Positions 3,497 to 33,838 of a stretch of 64,000 nt of DNA are shown one piece after another. The DNA is taken from sequence record NC_027399.1; one strand, 5' to 3'. The notes below the pieces were generated by a model. That model did not search any database. It was given only the letters and a program-made list of their open reading frames with translations, and had not been told where the DNA came from. The position numbers and the translations under genes were made by a program. Position 1 is the first letter of the stretch; each line of letters opens with the position of its first letter.

Positions 3497-4077
3497 ATGC
3501 TAGAGAATTNTTCCCTACAAAAGAGGAAGTTGGATTAGGTCATGTATCAGATTTGGATTATGATATTTACGTTGCTATGGTAATTGTTGGTCAAGCAAAA
3601 AATGTTCATGAAGTACATGAACGATTTACAAAACTAGAGAATGAAAGAAATTATACAAATGAATTGAAATCTGAACCTGAAATACAAGGTAGATTGTTTA
3701 TTGTAAAAAATACAAGAACATTAGAATTAATTTTGATACCTACTAAAGAAACATTTAATGAGATATCAAAAACCGAAGAATATCTTTTGAATAATCATGG
3801 AATTTCTTATAAATCAAAAGACTGGATTATAGACACAGTACTGTACGTTTCTCGCAAAGATAGAGGATTAACAAGAGTACATGATTTATATTCTTCTGTT
3901 CTAAAAATTGTTACACCAAATGAATTTGGAATATTCAGTCCAGAACAATATGATATAATCATGAACTGTATTAATGATAAAATATCAAGATGTTATAATC
4001 GTTGTGTATATCCAAATGGATATCATAGTAATAAAAATTTTCACTACAAATACAATGAAATATGGAATAAAGTATAA
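3497..4077 (+). CDS. hypothetical protein, reading frame broken by ambiguous base at 3510
   Basis: SD AGAGGGG + ATG 3497 joins the 3553-4077 frame if n stands for 2 nt. Confidence 0.6.
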
Positions 4078-4472
4078 TGAACAATAAAGAGTCCCTTTTT
4101 CTTGCTAAAAAGATATACAACACAGCACAACTTTTTTATAATTCAAGTTTCAACTGTACTGGATTTAAGAGAAGTTTTGTGGGGCTGGATTATGAATACA
4201 AATTTTCCAATTTAATTGTTTTCAGTACTGAAAATACATATGGCTGTTTCTTTTCTTTTAAAAAAAATATTATAATTTTTGATAATGAATTCGCCGGTAT
4301 AATTGAATGTGAATACGAAGATGGAACACGTAATTATCTTTCCCGTATAATGAATTTACATCAACAGTGCCAACCTGTGAATACAAAGGATAATATGTCA
4401 GTACTGACAATTTTTTCGTACTTAGCCCAGATGAAGTGTCAACCATTCTATATGGATTTACGCATAATTTAG
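4077..4472 (+). CDS. family A-related protein (paralog of 3061)
   Basis: See 3061; ends KCQPFYMDLRII. Confidence 0.75.
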   Translation: MNNKESLFLAKKIYNTAQLFYNSSFNCTGFKRSFVGLDYEYKFSNLIVFSTENTYGCFFSFKKNIIIFDNEFAGIIECEYEDGTRNYLSRIMNLHQQCQPVNTKDNMSVLTIFSYLAQMKCQPFYMDLRII

Positions 4473-4548
4473 GGGGTATATTTTGTGTTAAAAATTCACT
4501 GTCACAACGGTATATTTTTTTTGTAACACTGCAATACATAACGGAAAG

Positions 4549-4782
4549 TTGATTTATCATAAAAGTGAGGATTCTTTTTATTATACCCATGTGAATTCTG
4601 AAAAAATGCACAAAATTATTGATTATTCAGGATTACAAGAGGATGAACTTTTCCAGATGCATTTAGTATATGATAAAGTACTTAATTTGGATTTTTACAC
4701 TTTAACATATATTCAGACCAAAATGCGAGAATTATCAAAAATTTATACTGCTGATTTTAAGATTATAACACCTGAAATATAA
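4549..4782 (+). CDS. family A protein (short)
   Basis: DYSGLQEDELFQMHLVYD. Confidence 0.65.
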   Translation: MIYHKSEDSFYYTHVNSEKMHKIIDYSGLQEDELFQMHLVYDKVLNLDFYTLTYIQTKMRELSKIYTADFKIITPEI

Positions 4783-4783
4783 G

Positions 4784-5119
4784 ATGAATAAAAATATAAG
4801 AACCAATAATATTATGTGGTGCACTGTATATAAACTGATTTATACTACTTATGCTCTTATACGATTAGTTAGCAAAAATAATACAAAAATCGATGTTTAT
4901 TTCTATAATGACGGTACCAAAGAACATTACTTAACAGAGGGTAATGATATATATGAAATTCACGATTTATCCTCTTTGAGCACAGAAGAACATTTCCAAT
5001 TACTCACAGTATGGGATTATAAAACAGATATTGATTTTGTTATTTCTGCACATAAACGCATAGAGGAACTTAAAAAGGATGAGTTTTTCAATCGTGTCGA
5101 TACAGTGATTGAATATTAA
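4784..5119 (+). CDS. family A protein
   Basis: DLSSLSTEEHFQLLTVWD. Confidence 0.7.
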   Translation: MNKNIRTNNIMWCTVYKLIYTTYALIRLVSKNNTKIDVYFYNDGTKEHYLTEGNDIYEIHDLSSLSTEEHFQLLTVWDYKTDIDFVISAHKRIEELKKDEFFNRVDTVIEY

Positions 5120-5286
5120 AACAGCGTACAAAAAAATGATTTATGATAAAAATGTTGAGTATATAACCCAGTTCATAGTACTATCATACACCAGATATGG
5201 CAGTTCTGGTTCCAGGTATATTGATAGTATACTTAAACAACATATTGAGTTTAATGTTATCAATAACAAGAAAGGTTAATATAGAA

Positions 5287-5751
5287 ATGGGTTTTGATAC
5301 AAGAGAAGGTGCACTCTTTTATGCAAATCAAATATGTAATTTAGTTTTGTATTACAAAAGTAATGAAAATTTATTAGATGAATATAAATGTTTGTATTCT
5401 AAAGTCGATGATGTATTAAGAATTTCTTTAGAAATAGAACACAAAAACCCATTCCCTGAATCAATTATTGATTTTCAAGAAAAATATATTAATTATATTC
5501 CAGGTAAAGAATGTGAATTAATTCTTTCCGATGTATTTGGTCATAGTATCAAAATCGATCCCAGTGTTCTAAATGAAGAATTGAATACCAGTACAGAAGA
5601 AGGTTATTTCCAGAAGAGTACTATATACAATTCTGATGAATTGTTCTGCATTATTCTTTTTGAAAATATAGTACGTAAAATTCCTTTTCAATTCTACATT
5701 GATTTGGAAACAATTAATGACCTAATAAAAGAGAAAAATTATGCGATATAA
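5287..5751 (+). CDS. family A protein
   Basis: STEEGYFQKSTIYNSDEL...FYIDL; ATG 5287 has AAGGT SD. Confidence 0.75.
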   Translation: MGFDTREGALFYANQICNLVLYYKSNENLLDEYKCLYSKVDDVLRISLEIEHKNPFPESIIDFQEKYINYIPGKECELILSDVFGHSIKIDPSVLNEELNTSTEEGYFQKSTIYNSDELFCIILFENIVRKIPFQFYIDLETINDLIKEKNYAI

Positions 5752-6076
5752 AATATACAAAAGCGACCTCCTTGTTGTAGCTGAATACATTTGTGATGAT
5801 ATGTTCAATATGTTCAAAAATGAACATGATTTTATTTTAAATTTAAGTACTAAAAAATTTAAGTTGAACTATTATGGTTCATATGAATTATCTGAACACT
5901 ATTCAATTGATTTAAATGATTGTACTCAGATGCAGGACGATGAATTGTTTCAATACTCTTTAATTTTTGATTTTAATTTATTAAGTTTAAAGGATATTGT
6001 ATCGCTTCAAAAAGAAATGCTTACTATACAAGATGATACATATGGCACTAAAGAAATTAATTTTATTGACTTTTGA
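5741..6076 (+). CDS. family A protein
   Basis: DCTQMQDDELFQYSLIFD. Confidence 0.75.
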   Translation: MRYKIYKSDLLVVAEYICDDMFNMFKNEHDFILNLSTKKFKLNYYGSYELSEHYSIDLNDCTQMQDDELFQYSLIFDFNLLSLKDIVSLQKEMLTIQDDTYGTKEINFIDF

Positions 6077-6137
6077 ATGTATACGTGATAATATATGTGG
6101 GATGGGTGATATAAAACCATAAAAAGAGGAATATATA

Positions 6138-6503
6138 GTGCATACAACTCAAGAAATACAAATAAAATTAAAAATTAATAATTATTATAATAATACAGTT
6201 AGTGCTTCATATAATGAAGAAGTTTTGTACGAAATAAATTATTCCATGAATGATTCCATTTTTACATTTCGTGAGTACAATGGTATCACTTTAATAAGAT
6301 CTTATATAATTCCAGTTATTGATTATACCGAAATGCAAGATGATGAATTGTTTCAGTACTCTTTAATATACGATCTGGAACATGTTATCCCCTTTGACTC
6401 TATGGTTGAATTGCAGGGTATTATGAAATTACGTACACAACTACAAGGAGAGATTGAATACACATTTAACACAATGAATAAGAAGAATTATTATGTACAA
6501 TGA
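6138..6503 (+). CDS. family A protein
   Basis: DYTEMQDDELFQYSLIYD; GAGG SD. Confidence 0.75.
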   Translation: MHTTQEIQIKLKINNYYNNTVSASYNEEVLYEINYSMNDSIFTFREYNGITLIRSYIIPVIDYTEMQDDELFQYSLIYDLEHVIPFDSMVELQGIMKLRTQLQGEIEYTFNTMNKKNYYVQ

Positions 6504-6732
6504 ATGTATTAAATCTCACATAGAAAAAATAACTCTAATGTCTCCTGAGTATTTTACTTTACGAAATGCAAAAATTTATCGTAAAATACAAAAAGATGTT
6601 GTTAATTATTATCTTTCATTGTACTGCAATGGAACTAAATCAAATTATATCATAATAGATATAAGGTCTATAATTGATGGTACATTTAGTATCCAGTACA
6701 GAGTGTACCAAAGGAGTTACAATCATGACTAG
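6493..6732 (+). CDS. hypothetical protein (possible family B)
   Basis: Coupled ORF; weak similarity. Confidence 0.55.
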   Translation: MYNECIKSHIEKITLMSPEYFTLRNAKIYRKIQKDVVNYYLSLYCNGTKSNYIIIDIRSIIDGTFSIQYRVYQRSYNHD

Positions 6733-7006
6733 AGATGAATATTTTGTATTGCAATGCATCAATTCATTTTACTACGATATTACGATTAATTACAAATACA
6801 GGGAAGTATTATTCGAGTATATTTGTGAAGCAGAGGAGTACTACAACAAAAAAATAAAAGGTGCACCATGCACAATAAAAAACATAAATGAAGATGCTAT
6901 ACTGGAGAATATACACTGTATTGGATTTAAACATATATTATTCACTGTATATATGTTTAATCTAAAGAATTCAACAATAACTCGATACGAGAATATAGAA
7001 TTTTGA
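6725..7006 (+). CDS. family B protein
   Basis: EEYYNKKIKG; AAGGAG SD before ATG 6725. Confidence 0.7.
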   Translation: MTRDEYFVLQCINSFYYDITINYKYREVLFEYICEAEEYYNKKIKGAPCTIKNINEDAILENIHCIGFKHILFTVYMFNLKNSTITRYENIEF

Positions 7007-7227
7007 AAACAACAAAAAATATATCAAAACAACAAAGTACTGATCTCATGTTTAAAGCTTATTTACAAGTGGAATTGGAAAGTAGTACTTCTCCAGAGTG
7101 GTCGAGTTATCGTTTATCTGAATTGTTCATGTTGTATCATTTGGGTACTACGAGTCAGGATGAAATGTCTGAGTTTTACATTTATGCACTTATACATAAA
7201 ATGAATTATGTACACAAGGGTAAGTAA
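7003..7227 (+). CDS. family C protein
   Basis: LFMLYHLGTTSQDEMSEFYIYALIHKM. Confidence 0.7.
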   Translation: MKTTKNISKQQSTDLMFKAYLQVELESSTSPEWSSYRLSELFMLYHLGTTSQDEMSEFYIYALIHKMNYVHKGK

Positions 7228-7431
7228 ATGAAAACATTAACAATTCCGCAGTGGGCTAATTTATATGATTATTATCATGAAAAATACAAAACCAATTGCA
7301 AATCCAGTAAAGACGTGATAAGATGTATTGAAGTGACATTGATTGCTTCACTTGGTACAGATAAACAAACATATTGTGTAGAGCAATATGTTGCAATGCT
7401 AATTGATTACACAAAGGAGTTTCAACATTAG
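7228..7431 (+). CDS. family C protein
   Basis: TLIASLGTDKQTYCVEQYVAMLIDY. Confidence 0.7.
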   Translation: MKTLTIPQWANLYDYYHEKYKTNCKSSKDVIRCIEVTLIASLGTDKQTYCVEQYVAMLIDYTKEFQH

Positions 7432-7861
7432 TACAAATTTATCAAGTGCAGAATTAGATTTTTTGGTACGTAAATGTGATCCTTATGTCCAAAAATTACT
7501 AAAGAAATGTAAAACATATTCATACACAAATGTTAAATTACAGTTTGAATTTACTACAATAAAAATTTATTCCTGTGTGTTAATTGATTCTGATATTATA
7601 CCAAAAAGAAGTTCATGTGAAATTCCTTTGGAAATCTTTTATAAGAAACATTATAAATTATTAAAGAAGTTGAATTATATTCAGTACTACAGTAATGCTC
7701 ATTTGTTTACTGAATTACGATGTATGTATGATCAGTACCTTGAAAGCATGGGGGTATCTATTGACGATTTTGATGGATATCCTTTAAGTACTGAACAGAT
7801 TAATTTATACAAATTTGTTTTTAATTTTAATTGTTCATTTTTAAGGAATGAATTAATATGA
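7403..7861 (+). CDS. hypothetical protein
   Basis: 152-aa ORF in operon; start uncertain. Confidence 0.65.
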   Translation: MITQRSFNISTNLSSAELDFLVRKCDPYVQKLLKKCKTYSYTNVKLQFEFTTIKIYSCVLIDSDIIPKRSSCEIPLEIFYKKHYKLLKKLNYIQYYSNAHLFTELRCMYDQYLESMGVSIDDFDGYPLSTEQINLYKFVFNFNCSFLRNELI

Positions 7862-8196
7862 AAAACGAATTGCGTGGTTTATTGAGTACTCAATCGTTTC
7901 TTAAACAAATATTCACGGAAGAAATGGATTTTATCAGGAGAGAATTACTAAATCAATTGTTTGATAGTACTATTAAAAATTTTGCAAATGATTTTACAGT
8001 AATCAATAAAGATAAAATCGTATCAATTAAAATTCTGGTATGTAATACAAATACAAATACATTTGAATACATAAAATCAGATTTTGTTATAAATGAATTT
8101 ATTTGTTCTTTATTCAATGCTACCTGTCTTGTTGATAGTGTTGAGGGTTACAGCAGAATAACACGAGTACATTGTAAATTAATAGTAGGTATGTAA
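7858..8196 (+). CDS. hypothetical protein (possible family B)
   Basis: ATGA coupling. Confidence 0.65.
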   Translation: MKNELRGLLSTQSFLKQIFTEEMDFIRRELLNQLFDSTIKNFANDFTVINKDKIVSIKILVCNTNTNTFEYIKSDFVINEFICSLFNATCLVDSVEGYSRITRVHCKLIVGM

Positions 8197-8468
8197 TGCA
8201 AAAATATGAATTTGACTCAGTACATATCATCATAAGTACTTTATGGGATATGGATCCTTCTTATACCACAGTGTATTATAAAATATTCTCTTCAATACAA
8301 GATGATTTTAATAAAAAATACGCACAAAAAGAAGTACTCATAGAATCGAATAATAAAGTAATAAAAGAAAAAATATCGTACTACATTATTTCCTTTGGTG
8401 TATTGAAATTTATTTGTACAAATACATTTAGTAGACAATACTTCAGCGACAGGTGTCAATTATTATGA
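8196..8468 (+). CDS. family B protein
   Basis: IQDDFNKKYAQKEVLI (close to 2082). Confidence 0.7.
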   Translation: MQKYEFDSVHIIISTLWDMDPSYTTVYYKIFSSIQDDFNKKYAQKEVLIESNNKVIKEKISYYIISFGVLKFICTNTFSRQYFSDRCQLL

Positions 8469-8764
8469 CTAAAGAAGAATATATGAAAGTTTTGTTCATT
8501 AAAGAAATTTTTGTCCAAATGGTATTGGGTACTGATTATTTGTACAAAAATGCATTCATTAACATTCTTGAAGTACTACAAGATGATTTTGATTCAAAGT
8601 ATAATGGAATGAAAATAAATTACAAAACATATAATCAGGATTATATTAAAATTATCAAAAAATATACAATTAATTTAAGTTCTGTAAATTTTGAAACTGC
8701 ACTTGGAATGAGGTTTAAACATTTTGATTATTATTTGATTCCTATGGGATTTAAAGATGAATAA
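8465..8764 (+). CDS. family B protein
   Basis: LQDDFDSKYNGMKINY. Confidence 0.7.
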   Translation: MTKEEYMKVLFIKEIFVQMVLGTDYLYKNAFINILEVLQDDFDSKYNGMKINYKTYNQDYIKIIKKYTINLSSVNFETALGMRFKHFDYYLIPMGFKDE

Positions 8765-9058
8765 ATTCGAATACCAATCAATACAATTAATTAAAGAGTA
8801 TTCAAATTCTTTACACAGTTCTTTAATTTTTAAAAATAATAATTATTCCACTAAAATTTGTGATATAATTAATAATNTAAATGTATATCTAAAGAATTTT
8901 CTACAAAATATAAGAATAAAAATATAAAAACCGATGTAGATGTTTTTGTAATAGTTGGTTTCATTATACAACAAGATTTATGTGTTGTAAAATCACTAGC
9001 GAATAGTACTAATTATTTCTTTAATTGTAAATCCCTTATAGAAGGTGAACTTTTGTGA
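8757..9058 (+). CDS. family B protein, frame broken by ambiguous base at 8877 (not in ORF track)
   Basis: MNKFEYQ...IINN joins KCISKEFSTKYKNKNI...EGELL if n stands for 2 nt; GTGA overlap with 9055. Confidence 0.55.
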
Positions 9059-9393
9059 ATAAACCAAACATTTATCTGGAATTTGATAACAACATAAAGC
9101 AAGTTAATATGTTGAGATCAATTTTAAGAGATTGTTATATAGAAGCATATTACTACAAGAACTGGAATACTAAAATGTATTCTAATACATTATATTACTC
9201 ATTCAATGAATATTTAGATTACATTTCAGAAGAATTCAATGAAAAATATAATTCAATTGTACTTACCTACAATTCAAAAGAACATGTACTGAATAATATA
9301 GAAATGAGTTTGAAATTTATCACATTACATTTATCCAGTTCAGAATCACCAACGACAATTATTATTCATCCTTCATATCTGGATAAAATATAA
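9055..9393 (+). CDS. family B protein
   Basis: ISEEFNEKYNSIVL. Confidence 0.7.
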   Translation: MNKPNIYLEFDNNIKQVNMLRSILRDCYIEAYYYKNWNTKMYSNTLYYSFNEYLDYISEEFNEKYNSIVLTYNSKEHVLNNIEMSLKFITLHLSSSESPTTIIIHPSYLDKI

Positions 9394-9596
9394 TGAATGA
9401 TTTGGATTCACTGTTGTGGTATACTTTATCTGTTCTTTCATTTGAACGTGATAAACACAAAGTACGAGCTTCTAAAAATCCAGACATATTACAGAAAAAG
9501 AAAGAATACGCATTAGTGTATTCTTTGGAAAAATCATTTATTTCTATGCATCTGGAATACAGAGAATACATAACATCAAATGGTATTAAAAAATGA
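9393..9596 (+). CDS. hypothetical protein
   Basis: Coupled small ORF. Confidence 0.6.
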   Translation: MNDLDSLLWYTLSVLSFERDKHKVRASKNPDILQKKKEYALVYSLEKSFISMHLEYREYITSNGIKK

Positions 9597-9928
9597 AATA
9601 TAAATCCATAGTACACAAAAGATTTAAGTCAATATATTACACGGAAATTAATGTTCATAAAAAAGTAAAAGGTATTGATTTTTATATTGATAAAGTATAT
9701 CTGGATTATGATGTAGTTACTAATACATTCGAATGTACAGACCTCTTTGATTCAATACCAGTACCTAACTTGGCTGAATTGAGTGAAGAAGAAGAATTTC
9801 AGTACTCATTAGTATATGAAGATATATGGGGATTTAAATGGGATTATTATCGAATGGTGTCTTATCAAAAAGCACTAATATCCTCTATAAAAAAACAAAA
9901 TTACTTATTAATTAATCTGGAATATTAA
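9593..9928 (+). CDS. family A protein
   Basis: NLAELSEEEEFQYSLVYE. Confidence 0.75.
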   Translation: MKYKSIVHKRFKSIYYTEINVHKKVKGIDFYIDKVYLDYDVVTNTFECTDLFDSIPVPNLAELSEEEEFQYSLVYEDIWGFKWDYYRMVSYQKALISSIKKQNYLLINLEY

Positions 9929-9929
9929 T

Positions 9930-10463
9930 ATGCAAAACAAGTACAATTATAATGACCCCGAATTTGCTACACTCGCATATGATATAGCAAAAATGGTAAA
10001 AGACTTAAAGGAATGTGCTATTGGTACTAAGGATATCAGCACTGTAATGAATACCGATGTAAATTTTAAGAAGGAATTACAGGTAACTGATTCGACAAAT
10101 CCATTGGCTGCATTCAAGAATTGTGTGGTAAATTACTATGGTGTAGTACAATGTAACATCGGATATAAATCCCACGAATGTAATATAGTAACTTTTGATG
10201 CATATGGAAATCTCCATGAAATTGATATTTATAAGGGTCAAAAATTAATCATTAAATTCATGGATAGATATCAATGTAGCATATCATATCATTTCGAATT
10301 ACCAAAAATTGATGGTGCATTCATTGATAATTATGATGCTTATATTTTTCAGTTAAGCACTACAAATGAATATTACAGTATCATTGATTTTGTACTTAGA
10401 ATGAAAATGAAATTCCAGAGTAATTTGTACTTAAAAGGAAGTATCCTTGATCTGGTGTTATAA
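9930..10463 (+). CDS. family A protein
   Basis: YDAYIFQLSTTNE. Confidence 0.65.
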   Translation: MQNKYNYNDPEFATLAYDIAKMVKDLKECAIGTKDISTVMNTDVNFKKELQVTDSTNPLAAFKNCVVNYYGVVQCNIGYKSHECNIVTFDAYGNLHEIDIYKGQKLIIKFMDRYQCSISYHFELPKIDGAFIDNYDAYIFQLSTTNEYYSIIDFVLRMKMKFQSNLYLKGSILDLVL

Positions 10464-10468
10464 AATAT

Positions 10469-10648
10469 ATGAAAATTTTAACAAAAGAAGAAGTACAAAA
10501 ACGATTAATTGTGCATGAAGATTATAAAACAATGCAAAGATTTTTTGAGATTCGTTTGTTGAATTTTATTGGTACTGATTATCAGAATAATTGTGTAAAT
10601 TTTTATATAAAAATGCTTCGATCTGAAATTAAACTAAAATTAAAATGA
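10469..10648 (+). CDS. family C protein (59 aa, not in ORF track)
   Basis: Manual: IRLLNFIGTDYQNNCVNFYIKML. Confidence 0.7.
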   Translation: MKILTKEEVQKRLIVHEDYKTMQRFFEIRLLNFIGTDYQNNCVNFYIKMLRSEIKLKLK

Positions 10649-10821
10649 AAAACATTAATAGTATTCAGTACCTTAAATTGTACAAAAAAGCACTGGATGA
10701 TTCCAATACAATGTTGGAGTTTAATGAAAACTTTTTCATATACGTATTGGGAACTAACTATCAAGAAAAGTTAATGCTTCCATATTTGGAAGCTCTCTGC
10801 TATTCAATGAAGAAAAAATGA
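10645..10821 (+). CDS. family C protein (58 aa, not in ORF track)
   Basis: Manual: FFIYVLGTNYQEKLMLPYLEAL. Confidence 0.7.
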   Translation: MKNINSIQYLKLYKKALDDSNTMLEFNENFFIYVLGTNYQEKLMLPYLEALCYSMKKK

Positions 10822-11009
10822 AAATGTTAACTCCAACCGAATATGACAATGTAATAAGTTTAGTATATGTTTCTTTACCACGAAAATGTAATTCTATCAG
10901 AAAATTTGAATTATATTTAAAAGCGGTTCTTGATACCAATTATCAGGCACAAATTGCAAATATATTCATTTCAAAACTTATTCTACATATGCAAGGAAAA
11001 ATTATATAA
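10818..11009 (+). CDS. family C protein
   Basis: YLKAVLDTNYQAQIANIFISKL. Confidence 0.7.
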   Translation: MKMLTPTEYDNVISLVYVSLPRKCNSIRKFELYLKAVLDTNYQAQIANIFISKLILHMQGKII

Positions 11010-11022
11010 TTTATTTGAATCG

Positions 11023-11046
11023 AAAAACCCCTTAATTGGGGTTTTT
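11023..11046 (+). terminator. intrinsic terminator
   Basis: AAAAACCCC-TTAATT-GGGGTTTTT. Confidence 0.75.
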
Positions 11047-11050
11047 GTAA

Positions 11051-11079
11051 TTGACTTTCTCTATAATTTAATGTACAAT
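11051..11079 (+). promoter_or_regulatory. sigma70-type promoter
   Basis: TTGACT-17bp-TACAAT. Confidence 0.7.
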
Positions 11080-11114
11080 GACAATAAATGTTACTAACAT
11101 AGGGGTATTATGTT

Positions 11115-11438
11115 TTGAAAATCATACTAGGCGAAGATAAGTATATCAAATTTTTAATCAATTTATATCAATCATTTAATTCAATGCCAGAAGATACTGA
11201 ATATGATAGGAATATGAAATTGATTTCTATAATTATGTCAGATACCATATGTGAACCACACATTGAGTATTTGAACAAAAAATACAAAAACAAAAGAGTA
11301 ACAGACCGACTTAATCATCCATATTATATTAGATATTTTAAAAGTACCCCACTGGCCCTCTTTGCTTATACATTTACTGTTAATTTTCATATGTTCAGTT
11401 TTAAAGATTTATATTTAACCGAGGAGTATTTCGTGTGA
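11115..11438 (+). CDS. family B protein
   Basis: HIEYLNKKYKNKRV. Confidence 0.7.
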   Translation: MKIILGEDKYIKFLINLYQSFNSMPEDTEYDRNMKLISIIMSDTICEPHIEYLNKKYKNKRVTDRLNHPYYIRYFKSTPLALFAYTFTVNFHMFSFKDLYLTEEYFV

Positions 11439-11728
11439 GTACGTATGAACGAATAGATAAAACAATACTAAAAACTTTACAAATGATTTATCGATTGACT
11501 AATTCAAGACACAAATACACTGAAATGTTCACTTATACATTTATTGAGTATCTTAATTCCAGATACGAATATTGTACTATAAATGATGATACATTCAGGG
11601 TGGTTGAATTTAAGATTGGGTTATTTGGTATTTTGTGTGTGATTAATTGTGAAAGAACCTGTAGAAATGAATACATTTATACCCATGATTTAGGTGATGT
11701 AGATTTTGTTGTAAAAAAAACATCATAG
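11435..11728 (+). CDS. family B protein
   Basis: FIEYLNSRYEYCTI. Confidence 0.7.
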   Translation: MSTYERIDKTILKTLQMIYRLTNSRHKYTEMFTYTFIEYLNSRYEYCTINDDTFRVVEFKIGLFGILCVINCERTCRNEYIYTHDLGDVDFVVKKTS

Positions 11729-11738
11729 AGATGATATA

Positions 11739-12056
11739 ATGAAACTATCAGAAGACAAATATTATTGTACTTTAGATTTAATTGCTGAATTATTTCTTGA
11801 TAATAAAATACGAAAAACATATGCTTCTTATACATTGAGTAAATTGCGAGGCATTCATTATGAAGAATATATTCAGTACTTATCTATGAAATACAAAAAT
11901 TCAGTATGTGATGTTTATTCTCATGGAGAAAGTGTCATTCTTGAATTTTCATATGATCAATTTGGTATTTTAATTTATTGTACTAACAATTCATACGGGT
12001 TTTGTACTAGATTGGATTTTGTGGAAATATCTTCTTATGAAAAAACTGAAAAATAG
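11739..12056 (+). CDS. family B protein
   Basis: YIQYLSMKYKNSVC. Confidence 0.7.
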   Translation: MKLSEDKYYCTLDLIAELFLDNKIRKTYASYTLSKLRGIHYEEYIQYLSMKYKNSVCDVYSHGESVILEFSYDQFGILIYCTNNSYGFCTRLDFVEISSYEKTEK

Positions 12057-12363
12057 TATAGTACACAAAACAATAAAAATGATTAATACTTCTATCATTT
12101 ATACAGATTTTGTATATTGCTCACAAACATATAAAAATTTATTTGATTTACTAATGGAACCGTATATTGAATATTTGAGAGAAAAATATATCAACAAACA
12201 AGGTTCAAGTTCTTACGGTGTTTCTATGAATTATTTTATAAACATAGTTGAAATAAATTCAGATCACGACTGGTTAGTTATTATTAAAGGACAAAATAGC
12301 ACTTTATGTTCTCAAAATTATGTATATTTCTCAATTGATGATTTTATTATAAAAGATGAATAA
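12037..12363 (+). CDS. family B protein
   Basis: YIEYLREKYINK. Confidence 0.7.
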   Translation: MKKLKNSIVHKTIKMINTSIIYTDFVYCSQTYKNLFDLLMEPYIEYLREKYINKQGSSSYGVSMNYFINIVEINSDHDWLVIIKGQNSTLCSQNYVYFSIDDFIIKDE

Positions 12364-12652
12364 AGAAAAAACACAAAGAACGATAGATTATATAGAAGAA
12401 TTACTTTTTGATGATTTGTATATGGGTAATATTATTCCACACAATGGTTCGTTTTTACATGATATAACATATGAAATATTAAAACCATTTATGGATTATC
12501 TTTATGTAAAATATACAGGAAAATTATGTTTAATTAATTCACTTAATACCTGTTCTTATATTACTTCAGTTGAAATAAGAGTTGTTGTTGGTATTGTATT
12601 CCTCACCAATTCAGAAAATAGTTACAAAATGAAGGATATAACAATAATATGA
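12356..12652 (+). CDS. family B protein
   Basis: FMDYLYVKYTGKLCL. Confidence 0.7.
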   Translation: MNKEKTQRTIDYIEELLFDDLYMGNIIPHNGSFLHDITYEILKPFMDYLYVKYTGKLCLINSLNTCSYITSVEIRVVVGIVFLTNSENSYKMKDITII

Positions 12653-12858
12653 AAAAGATATCAGATTTGGTATATTATGAAATTTTTTATAAGTACTTTG
12701 ACCGATTTACTAATACTATTCTGGATAAACCGTACAGAAAATATGAAATTGAATTATTGGCGTTCATCGGCACCGATCAACAACAACAGTGTCAGGATGA
12801 TTATATACTAGCGTTGATTCGATACATGAGATTTTACCAAAATGATGAAGAATATTAA
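12649..12858 (+). CDS. family C protein
   Basis: IELLAFIGTDQQQQCQDDYILAL. Confidence 0.7.
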   Translation: MKKISDLVYYEIFYKYFDRFTNTILDKPYRKYEIELLAFIGTDQQQQCQDDYILALIRYMRFYQNDEEY

Positions 12859-13036
12859 TATATTCGAAGCAGAAAAACTTCTAAACAAATATGAAAATGA
12901 ATACAAATACAACCAATGTGATAAATTAAGAAAATCCGAAATTCATTTTTTTGCGTTACTTGGTACTAATTTTCAGGATAACGTTTATAATTTTTATTTC
13001 GGTAATTTACTTAACAAAGCGAGGAATATAAATTAA
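12842..13036 (+). CDS. family C protein
   Basis: IHFFALLGTNFQDNVYNFYFGNL. Confidence 0.7.
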   Translation: MMKNINIFEAEKLLNKYENEYKYNQCDKLRKSEIHFFALLGTNFQDNVYNFYFGNLLNKARNIN

Positions 13037-13037
13037 T

Positions 13038-13220
13038 ATGAAACAGATTACTTTATTGGATTTATCTACCAGAAGAATAGTTGCAAGAAGATCAATGACC
13101 GAATATAATGAAATTAGATATCATGAATTAAATTTGTTTGCATCACTTGGTACTAATTTTCAGGAAAATCACAATCAGATTTATATTACTGCTTTAAAAG
13201 ATTCATTAAAGGTAAAATAA
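13038..13220 (+). CDS. family C protein
   Basis: LNLFASLGTNFQENHNQIYITAL. Confidence 0.7.
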   Translation: MKQITLLDLSTRRIVARRSMTEYNEIRYHELNLFASLGTNFQENHNQIYITALKDSLKVK

Positions 13221-13240
13221 AAATAATTTTTAATTTAAAC

Positions 13241-13268
13241 TTGACATTTGTTAATTTTGTGATATAGT
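13241..13268 (+). promoter_or_regulatory. sigma70-type promoter heading the main family A array
   Basis: TTGACA-16bp-TATAGT with TG extension. Confidence 0.65.
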
Positions 13269-13346
13269 ATTAAAATGAAATTCAAGTACTGGATTTTGTA
13301 CTGAAAATATTTTGTCAAATTAAATCGACTCATTGGGGTTAATAAA

Positions 13347-13556
13347 ATGAAATACACCGTTATTGGTATTTTGGGTTCAGATATTTGTAGTACTAACACC
13401 TCGCTGGAAGCAGTACAGGTTGTATTGAAACAGATCCCTTTGAGTGAAAAAAATGCGAAAAAGTTTGAAAATCGATTACAAAATGCAAAAGAAGGCTCCA
13501 CGATTTATATTGAATATGGTGGAGCTTCATGTGCTGTTAAAGTTCACAAGAATTAA
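13347..13556 (+). CDS. hypothetical protein
   Basis: 69-aa ORF, GGGG SD. Confidence 0.7.
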   Translation: MKYTVIGILGSDICSTNTSLEAVQVVLKQIPLSEKNAKKFENRLQNAKEGSTIYIEYGGASCAVKVHKN

Positions 13557-13564
13557 GGGTTACT

Positions 13565-13837
13565 ATGAAATTAATTAAAAATATTTTATTCTTTTTTATT
13601 TTTAGTATATGTATTACAAATAATGTATATGCCATACAAATGAATTGTGTCAATGTACAGGACAATAAATTTTGCACAAGTACAGATGAAAATGGTAATA
13701 CAGTACGTACCAACATTTATCGTTTTGGCAATATAGAAACCATCGAATCATCCGGTACTGATTCCAATGGAAACACTTTTGTTAACAAGTGTACTGTAAT
13801 TAAAATGGATAATTATAGTACTATTAATTGTAATTAA
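13565..13837 (+). CDS. putative secreted/periplasmic small protein
   Basis: Signal-peptide-like N-terminus; repeated CTSTDENGN / SGTDSNGN motifs with Cys. Confidence 0.65.
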   Translation: MKLIKNILFFFIFSICITNNVYAIQMNCVNVQDNKFCTSTDENGNTVRTNIYRFGNIETIESSGTDSNGNTFVNKCTVIKMDNYSTINCN

Positions 13838-13847
13838 GGTACACTAT

Positions 13848-14243
13848 ATGTCATTTATGAAAGATAAAGAATATGCTGACATAATAATTAAAATTATAAA
13901 ACATTTAAAACAACAAAATTCTGATCTAGGAACTTCAAATTTTAATGAATATGCAAGCTTTGGATATTTGTGTTATAATTATAATGAACCAACATTGACT
14001 TATTTTTATGATAAAAAAGACAAAGATTTCGACAAGTTTTTAACTAAGATGGAAGCACTTTCATTTGATATCAGTACAGAAGAAGGTTATTTCCAGGCGT
14101 CTTTGATGTATCCAGATTCACAAATGCGAGTAATATTTTTATTTTCAGAATTGAAAAAGAATTTTAAAAATGATTCATTTGTTATTCCAATGAAGTTACT
14201 AAATGATAATTTAATATATAAAGGTTATGACTGTTATGTCTGA
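13848..14243 (+). CDS. family A protein
   Basis: DISTEEGYFQASLMY. Confidence 0.8.
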   Translation: MSFMKDKEYADIIIKIIKHLKQQNSDLGTSNFNEYASFGYLCYNYNEPTLTYFYDKKDKDFDKFLTKMEALSFDISTEEGYFQASLMYPDSQMRVIFLFSELKKNFKNDSFVIPMKLLNDNLIYKGYDCYV

Positions 14244-14625
14244 ATTTGAAAAAATTATTAAACGTTGTGAAATGTATTTTTCTTTTATTACCAAAAATAT
14301 AGAAAAAACAGAAAGAGAATATGTTTTAAAATGCGAATACAAAGATAATGGATTTATCTGTTATACACCAGAAAATGATGAATGTTATTTTTATTTTCCA
14401 GATCCAGAATTTGGTTCTTCTGGTATAAAAACAGAAATACCAAATGATGTTCTAACCGAAGAAGGATATTTTCAGTACTCAACTATTTTTGATAATGAAA
14501 AATTATTCAGTATGGTGTTAATGAAATATTTTAAAGATAATTGTGATTTTAGATTTTCTGTAGAGGCTACTGATTGTCTTTTTGATTTCCTACAAAGAAC
14601 AGTGTACAATGAAAATACTAACTGA
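14236..14625 (+). CDS. family A protein
   Basis: DVLTEEGYFQYSTIF. Confidence 0.8.
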   Translation: MSEFEKIIKRCEMYFSFITKNIEKTEREYVLKCEYKDNGFICYTPENDECYFYFPDPEFGSSGIKTEIPNDVLTEEGYFQYSTIFDNEKLFSMVLMKYFKDNCDFRFSVEATDCLFDFLQRTVYNENTN

Positions 14626-30549: not shown

Positions 30550-31410
30550 ATGAAATTATATTTTTTATTTTCTTTTGCTGAAGATATGTATGGATTTGCA
30601 GAAGATGCAGAAAGTGATGGAATCTCATCACATACCAGGCATCAAAAACACCCACATGAGTTTTATAATAATTTATTCATGTTTATGCAATATAAAATTT
30701 TCTCATCTGAATTTGATAATTTAGATCACCCATGGGAATTACCTTTAATTGATATTCCAGACGAATACGTATTTCAGTTCATGTTAATGGGTCTGGAAGA
30801 CTATGACTTAGTTGTTTATAACTACAGAACTAAACGCATTATGCTTGGAACTCACGATAGTTCCATTGTATATGTTTCAAGTACTAATGATGAGTTAGCG
30901 TCTGATGAAGGTAATTATAGAAAATCTTATGGTTATATAGAAAATGATAATGATTTTATTTTAGATTTTCGTGTATCAGAAGAAGAAAGAAGAAAAAGAG
31001 AAACTTATCAAGTGGAGTTAAAACCAGATAATGGTTATAATGAAATTTTGGAAGTACTTAAACCATACTACCTTGATATTGTTTATAAGAAATATAAACG
31101 CCTGCTAAATCATCTTAGCGAAAAAGAACCAATTGGTTTTGAAACCAATTCATTACGTAATAGCATCATATTTCCACCTAGAGTAATGAAATATGGTGAA
31201 GTTTCTAAACACAAGATGAAACTATATCCAGATGATATTGAAGTTCTATATCATTCGTGGTTGAATAATGATGAACTATATGTAGAAAATAAAAAGTTAA
31301 TGCGTATAAGTAATAATGATGATAGATTGCTACAAGCGTGGTATAATGATTCATATTCTGCATTTACTGACAGTAATTCTGAGTATTGGAAGAATACAGG
31401 ACAAAACTAA
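30550..31410 (+). CDS. hypothetical protein with N-proximal family A-like motif
   Basis: DIPDEYVFQFMLMG. Confidence 0.7.
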   Translation: MKLYFLFSFAEDMYGFAEDAESDGISSHTRHQKHPHEFYNNLFMFMQYKIFSSEFDNLDHPWELPLIDIPDEYVFQFMLMGLEDYDLVVYNYRTKRIMLGTHDSSIVYVSSTNDELASDEGNYRKSYGYIENDNDFILDFRVSEEERRKRETYQVELKPDNGYNEILEVLKPYYLDIVYKKYKRLLNHLSEKEPIGFETNSLRNSIIFPPRVMKYGEVSKHKMKLYPDDIEVLYHSWLNNDELYVENKKLMRISNNDDRLLQAWYNDSYSAFTDSNSEYWKNTGQN

Positions 31411-31413
31411 ACC

Positions 31414-31441
31414 AAGGACGGCGTAAAAACCGTCCTTTTTT
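31414..31441 (+). terminator. intrinsic terminator
   Basis: AAGGACGG-loop-CCGTCCTT-TTTT. Confidence 0.8.
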
Positions 31442-31445
31442 AATA

Positions 31446-31483
31446 TATAAATATCTGAACGAAAAATAGATTTAAGATATAAT
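31446..31483 (+). promoter_or_regulatory. candidate promoters for the intergenic transcript
   Basis: T4-late-like TATAAATA at 31446-31453; TATAAT -10 at 31478-31483 with weak -35. Confidence 0.5.
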
Positions 31484-31489
31484 GTATGT

Positions 31490-31960
31490 AATTACAAGGA
31501 TGTTGGATGCACAGGATGTGCATACACTAAAAACCTGATCCACTCGAAACAAGTAGAGGGCAGATGAGTATACCAACAATACGCCGTGTAGAGGATACCC
31601 GTTTAGGCGAGTCGACACGTTAAAGGGCAAAGGTAGCACGATTGCCCCAATCTCTCAGGAGATTGATAGGACGCGAATCCAGTTAAGTCTGGACATTAAG
31701 TGTAAAAGGGAGATTATTTTCTTTTAGATATTTTGGAAATAATCACAGTATTGAATTGCTTGAATAGTTCGGTACTGAAGTGCAAGTATGTTTAAACTTG
31801 TGACCGTTGCATGTGACTGCGATAAGGGGAAACCGGGCAACCCGCCTCTGCCTAATAAATTAAATTTATTAGAATTCGCAATTCAAGGAATTTCGACAGC
31901 TACGAGCTTCAAGGCTTAGCTTTTTTATTTCTCTTCCCCTCCCTGTGGGGGGATGAAAAT
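31490..31960 (+). ncRNA. candidate large structured ncRNA with CsrA-type GGA hairpins at the 5' end
   Basis: No long ORF; GC-richer than flanks; hairpins ATGCACA-GGA-TGTGCAT, GGGCAA..TTGCCC, CAATCTC-TCAG-GAGATTG, TCCAG..CTGGA, GG-GAAA-CC, CTAATAAAT..ATTTATTAG; 3' end not defined. Confidence 0.5.
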
Positions 31961-31988
31961 ATCTCGTGCAAACGCCTTCAAGTATTGA

Positions 31989-32099
31989 AATTCACGAAGT
32001 GAATTGAAATTACTTGTTCTGTAGTCGAACGACAGTGAGACGTGAGAACAAGTAATTTCTGCATGTATCAACGAAGTGACAACGAGTTGATACATAGCA
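31989..32099. repeat. cluster of three inverted repeats (ssi/PAS-like DNA hairpins)
   Basis: AATTCAC-GAA-GTGAATT; 15-bp IR 32006-32020/32045-32059; 10-bp IR 32063-32072/32086-32095. Confidence 0.75.
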
Positions 32100-32150
32100 C
32101 TTTAAAACATTATTAAATTCAATAATTAATATTATTATGGTTTTAAAGAA

Positions 32151-32762
32151 ATGAATTTAGAAGAACAGAAAAAAATCGCTTCAAGAAAACAAAAGAAAGG
32201 AATTGATATTAAGTACTTGAATAAGGAATTTCAAATAGTTCATAATCCAGATAGCTCTTTTTGTGGTTACAGAATACGAACAGAACAAAATACATTATCT
32301 AATATAAGCGAGTATGAAAATGGTACTGAAATAGGAATTATTCATTTCAGACCAACTCAAACTCCAACAATACTCGGAGCTAGATATAAACAATATTTTG
32401 AAGAGAGATATACCAATGGAAACATTTCTATTCATTATACATTTTATAAAAGTGTATTAATTGGTGAATACAAGAAATATGATTCAGATGGGAATTTAAC
32501 ACTAAGAGAATTCTATGATGGAAATGGTGATTGTACTAAAGAAATAAAAGAATTCATTGGTTTTAATGGAACCGATGAGGAATTTATGCATTACGAATTT
32601 AAAGAAGATGAAGAATTTAATATATTAATGAGATATGGTTCTCACTTCAAATTAATAAAAGAAATAAAGTTTAAAACAGAATATTTTAATTACGTATATG
32701 AAAATTGTCTTAAACGTGGTTATATACGTAACGATTTATTGAATAAGAAACACAAACACTGA
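32151..32762 (+). CDS. MORN-variant repeat protein
   Basis: ERYTNGNISIHYTFYKSVLIGEYKKYDSDGNL resembles MORN2/YwqK repeats. Confidence 0.5.
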   Translation: MNLEEQKKIASRKQKKGIDIKYLNKEFQIVHNPDSSFCGYRIRTEQNTLSNISEYENGTEIGIIHFRPTQTPTILGARYKQYFEERYTNGNISIHYTFYKSVLIGEYKKYDSDGNLTLREFYDGNGDCTKEIKEFIGFNGTDEEFMHYEFKEDEEFNILMRYGSHFKLIKEIKFKTEYFNYVYENCLKRGYIRNDLLNKKHKH

Positions 32763-32786: not shown

Positions 32787-33305
32787 ATGGAAAAGAAGAA
32801 AAACAAACACGCGGTACACTTCAGTACAAGAAAAAATGATCTATGGACAACACCAAAACCATTGTTTGATAAACTTAATGCTTTGTGGAATTTTACAGTA
32901 GATGTTGCTTGTACTCATGAAACTGCTTTGTGTCTTAAACATTACACACCAGAAGATGATGGTTTATCACAGGACTGGAGCAATGAAACATTTTGGTTAA
33001 ATCCACCTTATAGTGATTTATCTCCGTGGTTATCAAAAAGTGTTGAAGACTATAACAGAGGTGCTACTGGTTTGATTTTGGTTCCAGCAAGAACTGATAC
33101 CAGAGCTTTTCAGAATTTTGCTTCTCCTTTTTGTGATGCTATGTGTTTTATAAAAGGAAGGCTTAAATTTGGTAATCCATTAAAACCAGATGATAAACTA
33201 TCATCAGCACCATTTCCTTCTTGTATTATAGTACTGGATAAGAATCTAACACAAGCGAAAATAGATTGCCTAAAATCATTAGGAAACACTATGGTTAACA
33301 TATGA
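32787..33305 (+). CDS. dam: phage N6-adenine DNA methyltransferase (Dam-like family)
   Basis: WTTP..LF, DGL.Q.W, NPPY, LVPARTDT, FIKGRLKF; target sequence unknown. Confidence 0.85.
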   Translation: MEKKKNKHAVHFSTRKNDLWTTPKPLFDKLNALWNFTVDVACTHETALCLKHYTPEDDGLSQDWSNETFWLNPPYSDLSPWLSKSVEDYNRGATGLILVPARTDTRAFQNFASPFCDAMCFIKGRLKFGNPLKPDDKLSSAPFPSCIIVLDKNLTQAKIDCLKSLGNTMVNI

Positions 33306-33838
33306 ATAAATGTATAATTACTTTTGGTAGAATAAATCCAATTCATTTAGGTCATGGGATTTTATTCAATAAAGTACAAGATATTAGTACTGAATTAAAT
33401 GCAGATTTTCGAATTTATCTCAGTACTACACAAGATCCAAAGAAAAATCCACTTCCACCTAATCTAAAACAATATTACACTTCAAATTTTTATCCAAACA
33501 TTAAAGATGTATTGAGTACTGAAAGTAATGTGATTAATATTATGCAAGATTTGGATTCTCAGTACAGTGATATTATTTTTGTTTGTGGATCAGATCGAAT
33601 AAATTCCTTTAAAAAAGCACTTGACAGTGCCAATGGAAAATTATATAATTTCGATTCAATAGAAGTAATTCAGGCTGGGATTGAAAGAGAATGTAGCAAA
33701 TATAGTAGTACTGTAATGCGTTCGTATGCACTTGATGGTGATTACAACTCATTTAGTACCTTTTTACCTGGAAAAGATGTTTATTTAAAAGAACAGCTAT
33801 TTGAAGATGTTCGACTGTATTTGGGAGTACAAAAATGA
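33302..33838 (+). CDS. HIGH-motif nucleotidyltransferase (cytidylyltransferase-like)
   Basis: TFGRINPIHLGH, DPKKNPL, VCGSDR, SSTVMR. Confidence 0.8.
   Translation: MNKCIITFGRINPIHLGHGILFNKVQDISTELNADFRIYLSTTQDPKKNPLPPNLKQYYTSNFYPNIKDVLSTESNVINIMQDLDSQYSDIIFVCGSDRINSFKKALDSANGKLYNFDSIEVIQAGIERECSKYSSTVMRSYALDGDYNSFSTFLPGKDVYLKEQLFEDVRLYLGVQK

Follow-up and report, generated by a model that had tools for sequence, protein, structure and literature searches.

The stretch of DNA analysed here, referred to as the window, comprises 64,000 nucleotides (nt) of sequence record NC_027399.1 and is 100% identical to the Klebsiella jumbo phage K64-1 (AB897757, about 248001-312000), a RaK2-like jumbo phage of 346 kb in the genus Alcyoneusvirus. 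Positions 31455 to about 32100 of the window, on the + strand, form a self-contained gene for a large non-coding RNA whose family is absent from Rfam 15 and from the literature searched. The RNA folds into several domains, and this fold, which includes no fewer than two long-range or pseudoknot helices, is held by compensatory substitutions across 43 diverged copies. A first-pass annotation, made from the sequence without database searches, had flagged 31490-31960 as a large phage non-coding RNA, and this stretch is almost certainly a genuine structured-RNA gene: it has its own promoter, no conserved open reading frame (ORF), raised GC content, sequence conservation, and covariation in two domains and a pseudoknot. 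The extent originally given lies within the feature but is too short, as family homology spans the promoter (31455) to about 32100.

The gene occupies a gap of 740 nt (31411-32150) within a long array of small + strand genes. The gap is flanked by a 286-aa gene (30550-31410, phrog_15199, function unassigned) and a 203-aa gene (phrog_16210), and the next operon downstream begins at 32151. The rise in GC content that had been noticed is real, with 42% in the gap versus 29% in the 64-kb window. Neither BLAST nor the core model R1 described below detected a second family copy within the window; the K64-1 paralogue lies elsewhere in the genome.

Homologous sequence is present in 72 phage records, all from the RaK2-like clade, and the gap is conserved in every RaK2-like genus sampled, including Alcyoneusvirus, Asteriusvirus (121Q, PBECO4), Eneladusvirus (fHe-Yen9-04), and Mimasvirus (CBB). 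Further carriers include Cronobacter phage GAP32, Serratia phage BF, Erwinia phages, Salmonella phages Munch and 7t3, and Xanthomonas phages XaC1 and XbC2. Scans of IMG/VR, metagenomes, and GTDB genomes with the core pattern GACCGUUGCA...GAUA...GCAACCCGC show that the RaK2-like jumbo genomes hold 2-4 confirmed distinct copies each (2 in RaK2, 2 in 121Q by the exact pattern, and 3-4 in several uncultivated genomes), while BLAST marks up to 5 places per phage record. Some of these phage paralogues lie in gene neighbourhoods conserved across genera. Removal of near-duplicates at 96% identity and exclusion of one chance match to the search pattern (locus L078) left 43 non-redundant full-length copies. 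The 5' domain of locus L073 is divergent.

The first-pass annotation had proposed covariation across related phages as a check, and covariation proved strong in the core, in the 5' domain, and in the pseudoknot designated PK-A. Already in the flagged region of K64-1 the + strand has a folding energy of z = -3.57 relative to shuffled sequences. For the core, RNAalifold gives 28 base pairs, 23 of them with compensatory double changes. Core covariation was measured on 57 hits aligned by means of a covariance model. In this alignment 97.9% of cells are paired, compared with 70.0±0.8% after shuffling, and the covariation score is 0.771 compared with 0.220, none of the 500 shuffles reaching as high. 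In the 5' domain (31497-31626) the corresponding values are 98.3% versus 81.2% of cells and a score of 0.436 versus 0.128, again with 0/500 shuffles as high. As a further control, the pairing partner was slid by 1-3 columns, which lowers the paired fraction to 38-51% in the core; slid controls of the 5' domain give 27-47%. Since the covariation alignments were fitted to the model structure and the sequences are akin, the shuffle counts are not probabilities; the controls with slid partners and the large number of independent pair types point in the same direction as the shuffles. The K64-1 copy itself scores 131.7 bits with model R1 (core) and 89.6 bits with model R2 (5' domain), values that are not independent because both models were built from alignments that include it.

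The two long-range helices were assessed separately, PK-A on the domain alignment and PK-B sequence by sequence, because indels make the columns of a global MAFFT alignment unusable. In PK-A all 7 pairs are canonical in 42/42 sequences and double changes are found at 7/7 pairs, with such variants as GUCGAAU/AUUCGAC, AUUGUAU/AUACAAU, and UUCAUGU/ACAUGAA among the copies; slid controls leave 21-39% paired. In PK-B, 28 of 42 sequences form at least 6 contiguous pairs with their own partner, and the mean with the own partner is 6.5 pairs compared with a cross-sequence mean of 4.8. Other copies carry here CUGAUUGA/UCAAUCAG, CUGUUGA/UCAACAG, GUGUGG/CCACAC, or CCGAUUGAG/UUCAAUCGG. The support from covariation for this second helix is moderate. 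Mutual information with average-product correction recovers the helices and adds the closing pairs of the middle-domain hairpins, and compensatory changes are also present in a 3' hairpin (32023-32030/32035-32042). The features of the K64-1 copy, in the coordinates of the window, are as follows.

31414-31437, + strand: intrinsic terminator of the upstream 286-aa gene, a GC-rich stem of 8-9 bp followed by a T run
31455-31483, + strand: sigma-70-type promoter, with a CTGAAC -35-like element (31455-31460), a 17-nt spacer, and a TATAAT -10 element (31478-31483)
31490-31626, + strand: 5' domain, with PK-B, a variable hairpin, a hairpin with a GAAA..GUA loop, and nested helices
31501-31506 with 31573-31578, + strand: long-range helix PK-B of the 5' domain, UGUUGG with CCAACA
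31507-31523, + strand: variable 5' hairpin with loop GGA, 5' domain
31535-31563, + strand: hairpin with the conserved GAAA..GUA loop, 5' domain
31585-31589/31615-31619 and 31599-31602/about 31607, + strand: nested helices of the 5' domain
31625-31745, + strand: middle domain, with mutual-information pairs 31625-31653, 31712-31744, and 31713-31743
31625-31629/31645-31653, + strand: covarying hairpin, middle domain
31654-31670, + strand: conserved block of the middle domain, aligned to GAUAGACAUAUAAGG; the K64-1 copy reads UUGAUAGG; the domain also has a small hairpin
31706-31712, + strand: unpaired invariant AAGGGAG, present in 43/43 copies
31712-31713/31743-31744, + strand: closing pairs of a variable hairpin of the middle domain
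31744-31915, + strand: core domain, defined by model R1 and covariation
31746-31758/31765-31777, + strand: hairpin of 12-13 bp, whose loop CUUGAAU takes part in PK-A
31759-31765 with 31881-31887, + strand: pseudoknot PK-A of the core domain, CUUGAAU with AUUCAAG
31780-31785/31798-31804, + strand: core hairpin
31802-31811, + strand: invariant GACCGUUGCA, core domain
31818-31822/31876-31880, + strand: core helix
31825-31829/31845-31849, + strand: core helix around the invariant loop with GCAACCCGC (31837-31845)
31852-31872, + strand: variable core hairpin
31898-31930, + strand: terminator-like hairpin (31898-31921) followed by UUUUUUAUUU, in the minimum-energy fold
31931-32100, + strand: conserved 3' domain, with conservation equal to that of the core
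31934-31957, + strand: C-run/G-run hairpin, with G6 at 31947-31952
31976-31982, + strand: second CUUCAAG repeat, ending a conserved C/A/U-rich stretch; the first repeat is at 31907-31913
31989-32005, 32006-32059, and 32063-32095, + strand: three 3' hairpins with ACGAAGUGA-type loops

Invariant positions are concentrated in loops and junctions, which include GACCGUUGCA, GCAACCCGC, AAGGGAG, and G5-6AUGAA, among others. The 3' domain belongs to the family as a whole, as 31934-32095 of K64-1 can be aligned to all full-length copies. The 5' hairpin is kept as a hairpin with a free loop sequence, which reads GAAA in 121Q and AUUUC in Yen9-04. The sequence GGGAAACC had been taken for a GNRA-type loop; across the family it is instead part of a nearly invariant hairpin loop of 15-17 nt with no conserved tetraloop. 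In many members (L025, L033, L036, L046, and others) a hairpin motif ..ACAAUAUAGAUCCGUC.. is found twice per RNA, the first time behind AAGGGAG and the second time behind the invariant core loop. It is absent from the K64-1 copy, which has unrelated AT-rich hairpins (31712-31744, 31852-31872) in these places.

The gene appears to be equipped as an independent transcription unit. The terminator at 31414 that had been reported from the sequence is present as the hairpin at 31414-31437 and, judged by its sequence, is placed so as to insulate the RNA gene from transcription arriving from upstream. The promoter motifs, TATAAATA at 31446 and TATAAT at 31478, are likewise in place, as is the described transcript start TTACAAGGATGT-TGGATGCACAGGATGTGCAT at 31492-31523. 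The -10 hexamer was invariant in the first family alignment, and an extended -10 element, TGnTATAAT, precedes the core by 260-420 nt in most of the 43 copies. The corresponding sequence in the K64-1 copy is AGATATAAT, and its TATAAT (31478) lies 324 nt 5' of the core (31802-31845), inside the family range. Transcription is predicted to start at about 31490. At the other end, the terminator-like hairpin with its U run is found in 23/43 copies and is thus optional within the family; a short form of the RNA, about 435 nt long, likely ends in the stretch 31898-31930. Two forms of the RNA would then probably be made, this one and a read-through form of about 610 nt that includes the 3' domain. No clear terminator was seen in the window between the 3' domain and the next gene at 32151.

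The short repeats CUUCAAG (31907-31913, 31976-31982), for which the family consensus is CGUCAA/G, flank the terminator-like and G-run hairpins. Both repeats change in concert by lineage, with CGACAA twice in L036, CGUCAA twice in the near-identical L038, and CGAAG twice in L073. The repeats may pair alternately with one shared partner or pair across molecules, or local gene conversion may be responsible. A helix of the second CGUCA-type repeat with the segment after the 5' hairpin, or with GAUGAG, was considered and set aside, as the complementarity is present in some copies and does not track the variant lineages. Conversion is also suggested on a larger scale. The K64-1 copy and the RaK2 paralogue (L015) are 45-85% identical over 31490-31740 and about 100% identical over 31740-32090 save for one variable hairpin, the homology continuing to about 32140 (L015:2007-2374). 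Near-identical 3' halves combined with diverging 5' halves suggest partial gene conversion between the Alcyoneusvirus paralogues of one genome.

The first-pass annotation had allowed that the region might match a known RNA class. No Rfam 15 family matches the whole window at the gathering score, nor positions 31300-32250 at E values up to 10; at E up to 1, five homologous loci gave scattered noise with no recurring family. This check covers ROOL, GOLLD, OLE, raiA, RNase P, tmRNA (transfer-messenger RNA), 6S RNA, group I and II introns, and small ribozymes, none of which matched, and ARAGORN found no tRNA or tmRNA. No description of the family was found in the literature searched, and a large survey of RNA motifs in viruses mentions neither jumbo phages nor Klebsiella.

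In kind, the RNA is closest to the large ornate RNAs ROOL, GOLLD, OLE, and raiA, and it is a member of none of them. It shares with them a length of 400-800 nt, many covarying helices, pseudoknots, and invariant loop nucleotides, as well as carriage by phages or prophage-like elements and the lack of an evident obligatory neighbouring protein gene. It differs in matching no Rfam model up to E 10, in its distribution over enterobacterial jumbo phages and islands, and in the 2-4 diverged paralogues per genome. ROOL and GOLLD are known to multimerise (bioRxiv 10.1101/2024.12.08.627333). Non-coding RNAs have also been found by RNA sequencing in PA5oct, a Pseudomonas jumbo phage, whose ncRNA001-004 are abundant and 236-619 nt long (PMC7318152). 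These likewise belong to a distantly related jumbo phage dependent on the host RNA polymerase. As a candidate homologue, PA5oct ncRNA002 (L088:952-1402) was rejected, as it matches neither R1 nor R2 and lacks the invariant motifs; the comparison covers this one of the four PA5oct RNAs. The phi29 pRNA and the HK022 put RNA are similarly phage RNAs that act through their fold and not by base-pairing to a target mRNA, but they measure about 70-170 nt and have no sequence or model similarity to the K64-1 RNA. A role in packaging or antitermination drawn from this likeness would be pure analogy.

The family is also present outside phages. Small integrated islands in chromosomes of Enterobacteriaceae carry one full-length copy each, with promoter; examples are Escherichia coli LR-29-1 and EEC_W5 (beside ffs), Silvania hatchlandensis, Serratia sp., and an Enterobacteriaceae metagenome-assembled genome (MAG), and many metagenomic contigs also bear island copies. 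Besides an integrase and defence genes, the islands often contain a CI/Cro-type switch. A common layout, seen in L042 and related loci, consists of a large serine integrase, 0-3 unassigned genes, the RNA gene, a convergent CI-like S24 repressor gene, an HTH_35 Cro-like gene, a 286-aa gene, LprI, a resolvase, and then defence genes, for example Kiwa KwaA/KwaB or the candidate system PDC-M45A. With an identity of about 70%, both among themselves and to the phage copies, the island copies are not recent transfers. No protein is shared between islands and phages in tblastn searches of island proteins against all fetched phage loci, and two island core proteins have no match in 50,697 phage records. 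One ORF resembling an ADP-ribosylglycohydrolase and shared with phage was discarded as coincidental, being confined to one MAG and lying far from the RNA.

In the L042 locus (3733-14625 of metagenome contig ERZ773156 NODE_17), the serine integrase is followed by three unassigned genes, the RNA, the CI-like and Cro-like genes, the 286-aa gene, LprI, and the resolvase, and the island ends in the Kiwa defence system (KwaA, KwaB). Silvania (L035) and many metagenome loci share this core layout. Judging from gene content, such islands may represent an undescribed family of integrative elements carrying defence systems, or a phage satellite. The island of E. coli LR-29-1 (L033:4959-15303, ffs to ybaA) is of another type, with tyrosine-recombinase genes or fragments, IS3, a resolvase, the RNA gene at 8961-9573, and DUF4326, DUF488, and dual-OB genes, but without an adjacent CI-like gene. 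Its dual-OB protein matches the PADLOC candidate PDC-M45A, and about 700 nt 3' of the RNA (9573-10258) carry no annotation.

On balance, the RNA probably acts in trans as a folded molecule made by the host polymerase and working through its tertiary core. In this mechanism, host RNA polymerase would transcribe the RNA early in infection, and the folded product would rely on its invariant tertiary core, serving as a scaffold or decoy that engages a conserved enterobacterial component, forming an assembly of RNA alone, or acting as a ribozyme. Its mode of action would be other than CsrA titration. Action in trans is suggested by the combination of an own promoter, a conserved fold, invariant loops, paralogues, and occurrence in two unrelated kinds of mobile element that share no protein. 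Several points count against it. The promoter, the transcription start, and the 3' ends of the RNA are predictions, and action in trans is itself read from anatomy and distribution. As 20/43 copies lack the internal terminator, and the window has no clear one beyond the 3' domain, the RNA could here be a long 5' leader of the operon starting at 32151. A cis role of the DNA or RNA, for instance as an origin, would equally explain several copies per 350-kb genome and one per island.

The leading alternative, though an unlikely one, is a replication-origin element. By analogy with ColE1 RNA II or the R-loop origins of phage T4, the promoter would drive a structured primer transcript, and the G6 run, the downstream hairpins, and the AT-rich DNA would mark the conversion of an RNA-DNA hybrid to a primer. 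Several copies would then correspond to several origins in a 350-kb genome, and the island copy would serve replication, possibly by exploiting a helper phage. The copy numbers (2-4 confirmed per jumbo genome, 1 per island) fit this explanation, as does the fact that no replication gene was recognised in the sampled islands. So does the order of elements: behind a pause-like hairpin with its U tract comes a conserved G run, and then repeated ACGAAGUGA hairpins and AT-rich DNA. ColE1 RNA II, at about 550 nt, is of similar length. The transcripts of ColE1 and T4 resemble the present RNA in being promoter-driven, structured, about 500-600 nt long, and furnished with a G-rich segment, and in occurring as multiple copies in a large T4-related genome or as a single copy in a small mobile element. 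However, the present fold is far more elaborate and conserved: pseudoknots and many invariant loop nucleotides over about 430 nt exceed the known needs of a primer. The locus also shows no GC-skew inflection or change of gene orientation, which is weak evidence for phages, and within the islands the RNA gene is placed between the genes for the integrase and the CI-like repressor rather than next to genes of replication type. An antisense partner of the RNA I kind was not seen, though no search was aimed at one. If the RNA did prime replication, it would be the first defined type of origin for this phage clade.

A cis-acting leader is somewhat less probable again. Here the nascent RNA would modify the polymerase, as in antitermination by HK022 put or Bacillus EAR elements, or would switch read-through at the internal terminator. 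The position of the element agrees with this, as it heads a long co-directional array of small genes directly after a terminator, and the downstream gene is co-directional in 30/38 copies. The terminator-like hairpin in 23/43 copies, with conserved sequence beyond it, is also consistent with regulated read-through, and the two concerted repeats that flank it could reflect alternative pairings. In the remaining 8/38 copies, however, the downstream gene lies on the other strand. This applies to two conserved kinds of locus, the 121Q-type locus and the islands with the CI-like repressor gene, in both of which it is convergent. Moreover, downstream genes vary between loci, so there is no common regulated gene, and put and EAR elements are far smaller and simpler than the K64-1 RNA.

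For the trans-acting RNA, a wider role can be imagined, in which a new class of ornate RNA serves as common currency where jumbo phages and mobile defence islands are in conflict; this is speculative and unlikely to be correct. If it were true, some step essential to the phage, for instance the priming of replication, packaging, or the capture of a host machine, would depend on its paralogues, and the island copy, beside a CI-like gene and cargo such as Kiwa, would hijack that step in the manner of a satellite or act as a dominant-negative decoy. The concerted change of the CGUCA-type repeats would then be a sign of conformational switching or of one RNA molecule pairing with another. Few classes of large RNA with a conserved tertiary architecture are known, and these proved to be ribozymes, cores of RNA-protein particles, or RNA-only assemblies. 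The family described here, of about 600 nt, has two unusual habitats: lytic phages of 350 kb, each with several paralogues, and small integrative islands bearing anti-phage systems, each with one copy. It is open to direct experiment, since relatives grow on laboratory E. coli; phage Sharanji is recorded on K-12 strain MG1655.

The first-pass annotation had proposed a specific function, namely that the RNA is a phage-encoded sponge for CsrA, or is controlled by it, through 5' sites resembling the consensus from systematic evolution of ligands by exponential enrichment (SELEX). This is very improbable for ACAAGGAUGU and CAGGAUG, the two sites concerned, and a CsrA sponge in particular is very unlikely. 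The individual observations were largely accurate. The sequence ACAAGGAUGU (31494-31503) fits the core of the SELEX consensus, and the 7-bp stem exists as AUGCACA/UGUGCAU with GGA in a 3-nt loop (31507-31523), so that CAGGAUG is carried on a hairpin. Two 5' GGA motifs lie 16 nt from each other, which would suit a single CsrA dimer, and one AGGGA is found family-wide within the unpaired AAGGGAG. Of the two SELEX-like sites, only the first has the full ACARGGATGT; the second matches CAGGAUG only. This 10-mer occurs once in the window (31494), with 0.18 expected, and 17 of 100 shuffles contain at least one, which makes a single exact match unremarkable. The count of about 12 GGA was likewise right, at exactly 12 in 31490-31960 (471 nt), but it does not exceed chance (7.8±2.4 in composition-matched shuffles, p about 0.07).

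Conservation speaks more clearly, for the GGA loops, on whose presence in relatives the annotation had itself staked the proposal, are not conserved. Across the family only 2 of the 12 GGA are kept, at 31709 (AAGGGAG) and 31951 (GGGGGGAUGAA), while the three 5' GGA are retained in 1-2 of 43 copies, in Alcyoneusvirus only; the family median is 5 GGA per 470 nt. Several GGA of the K64-1 copy fall inside predicted helices. UGUUGG (31501-31506) overlaps the 3' part of the SELEX-like site, which is consequently in part one strand of the covarying helix PK-B and tied up in it, and the second site offers a hairpin loop of a mere 3 nt. The models of CsrB, CsrC, RsmX, RsmY, and RsmZ gave no match at the gathering score over the whole window or at E up to 10 over 31300-32250. 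With CsrB, CsrC, RsmY, and RsmZ the K64-1 copy has in common two 5' GGA motifs similar to the CsrA consensus, one of them on a hairpin. Unlike in those RNAs, the motifs are neither dense nor conserved, and conservation resides in a pseudoknotted fold and not in an array of GGA hairpins. Each RNA could accommodate no more than one or two CsrA dimers, compared with about nine for CsrB. The CsrA-like motifs thus appear to be a lineage-specific overlay, in the K64-1/RaK2 copy, on a variable hairpin and a structural helix. A lineage-specific contact with CsrA at the 5' end of this copy is conceivable but unsupported.

That the gap instead encodes small proteins, for example through the 43-aa ORF at 31788-31919, can be dismissed for practical purposes: ORFs of 38-56 aa do exist, some are annotated as hypothetical proteins in public records (in NC_027399, in phage Muenster as CPT_Muenster_135 of MT708547, and as g347/g348 of fHe-Yen9-04), and a + strand ORF of at least 30 aa crosses the core in 22/43 copies, but the three frames are open through the core in 4, 18, and 12 of 43 copies, close relatives differ by single-nucleotide indels in the core, and the substitutions compensate base pairs and are not codon-like. 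The original statement that there is no ORF therefore holds at the level of the family, where no core frame is open in a majority, and not literally. No small ORF is conserved behind GGGGGGAUG or across the core, and in several copies the short AUG frame that follows the G run has shifted, is truncated, or lacks its AUG. As frames are not conserved and the core contains indels, the hypothetical proteins annotated inside the RNA gene are probably artefacts or mis-annotations, and the public annotations of this stretch would be corrected accordingly.

Some observations concern the surroundings of the gene. A DNA adenine methyltransferase gene and a nucleotidyltransferase gene lie 3' of the K64-1 copy (32787-33838), and the same neighbourhood also follows the orthologous RNA copy in Munch and XaC1. 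The first-pass annotation had remarked on a single GTAC within the RNA gene; this count is right, but against about 3.6 expected from the density in the window it is not significant (Poisson estimate about 0.13). Over the window (1-64000), GTAC occurs 492 times, 1.69 times the second-order Markov expectation and mainly as AGTACT or AGTACA, while GCGC is found 0 times versus 16 expected and GATC at 0.65 times expectation. These biases could reflect avoided restriction sites, or DNA-modification and regulatory motifs of the phage.

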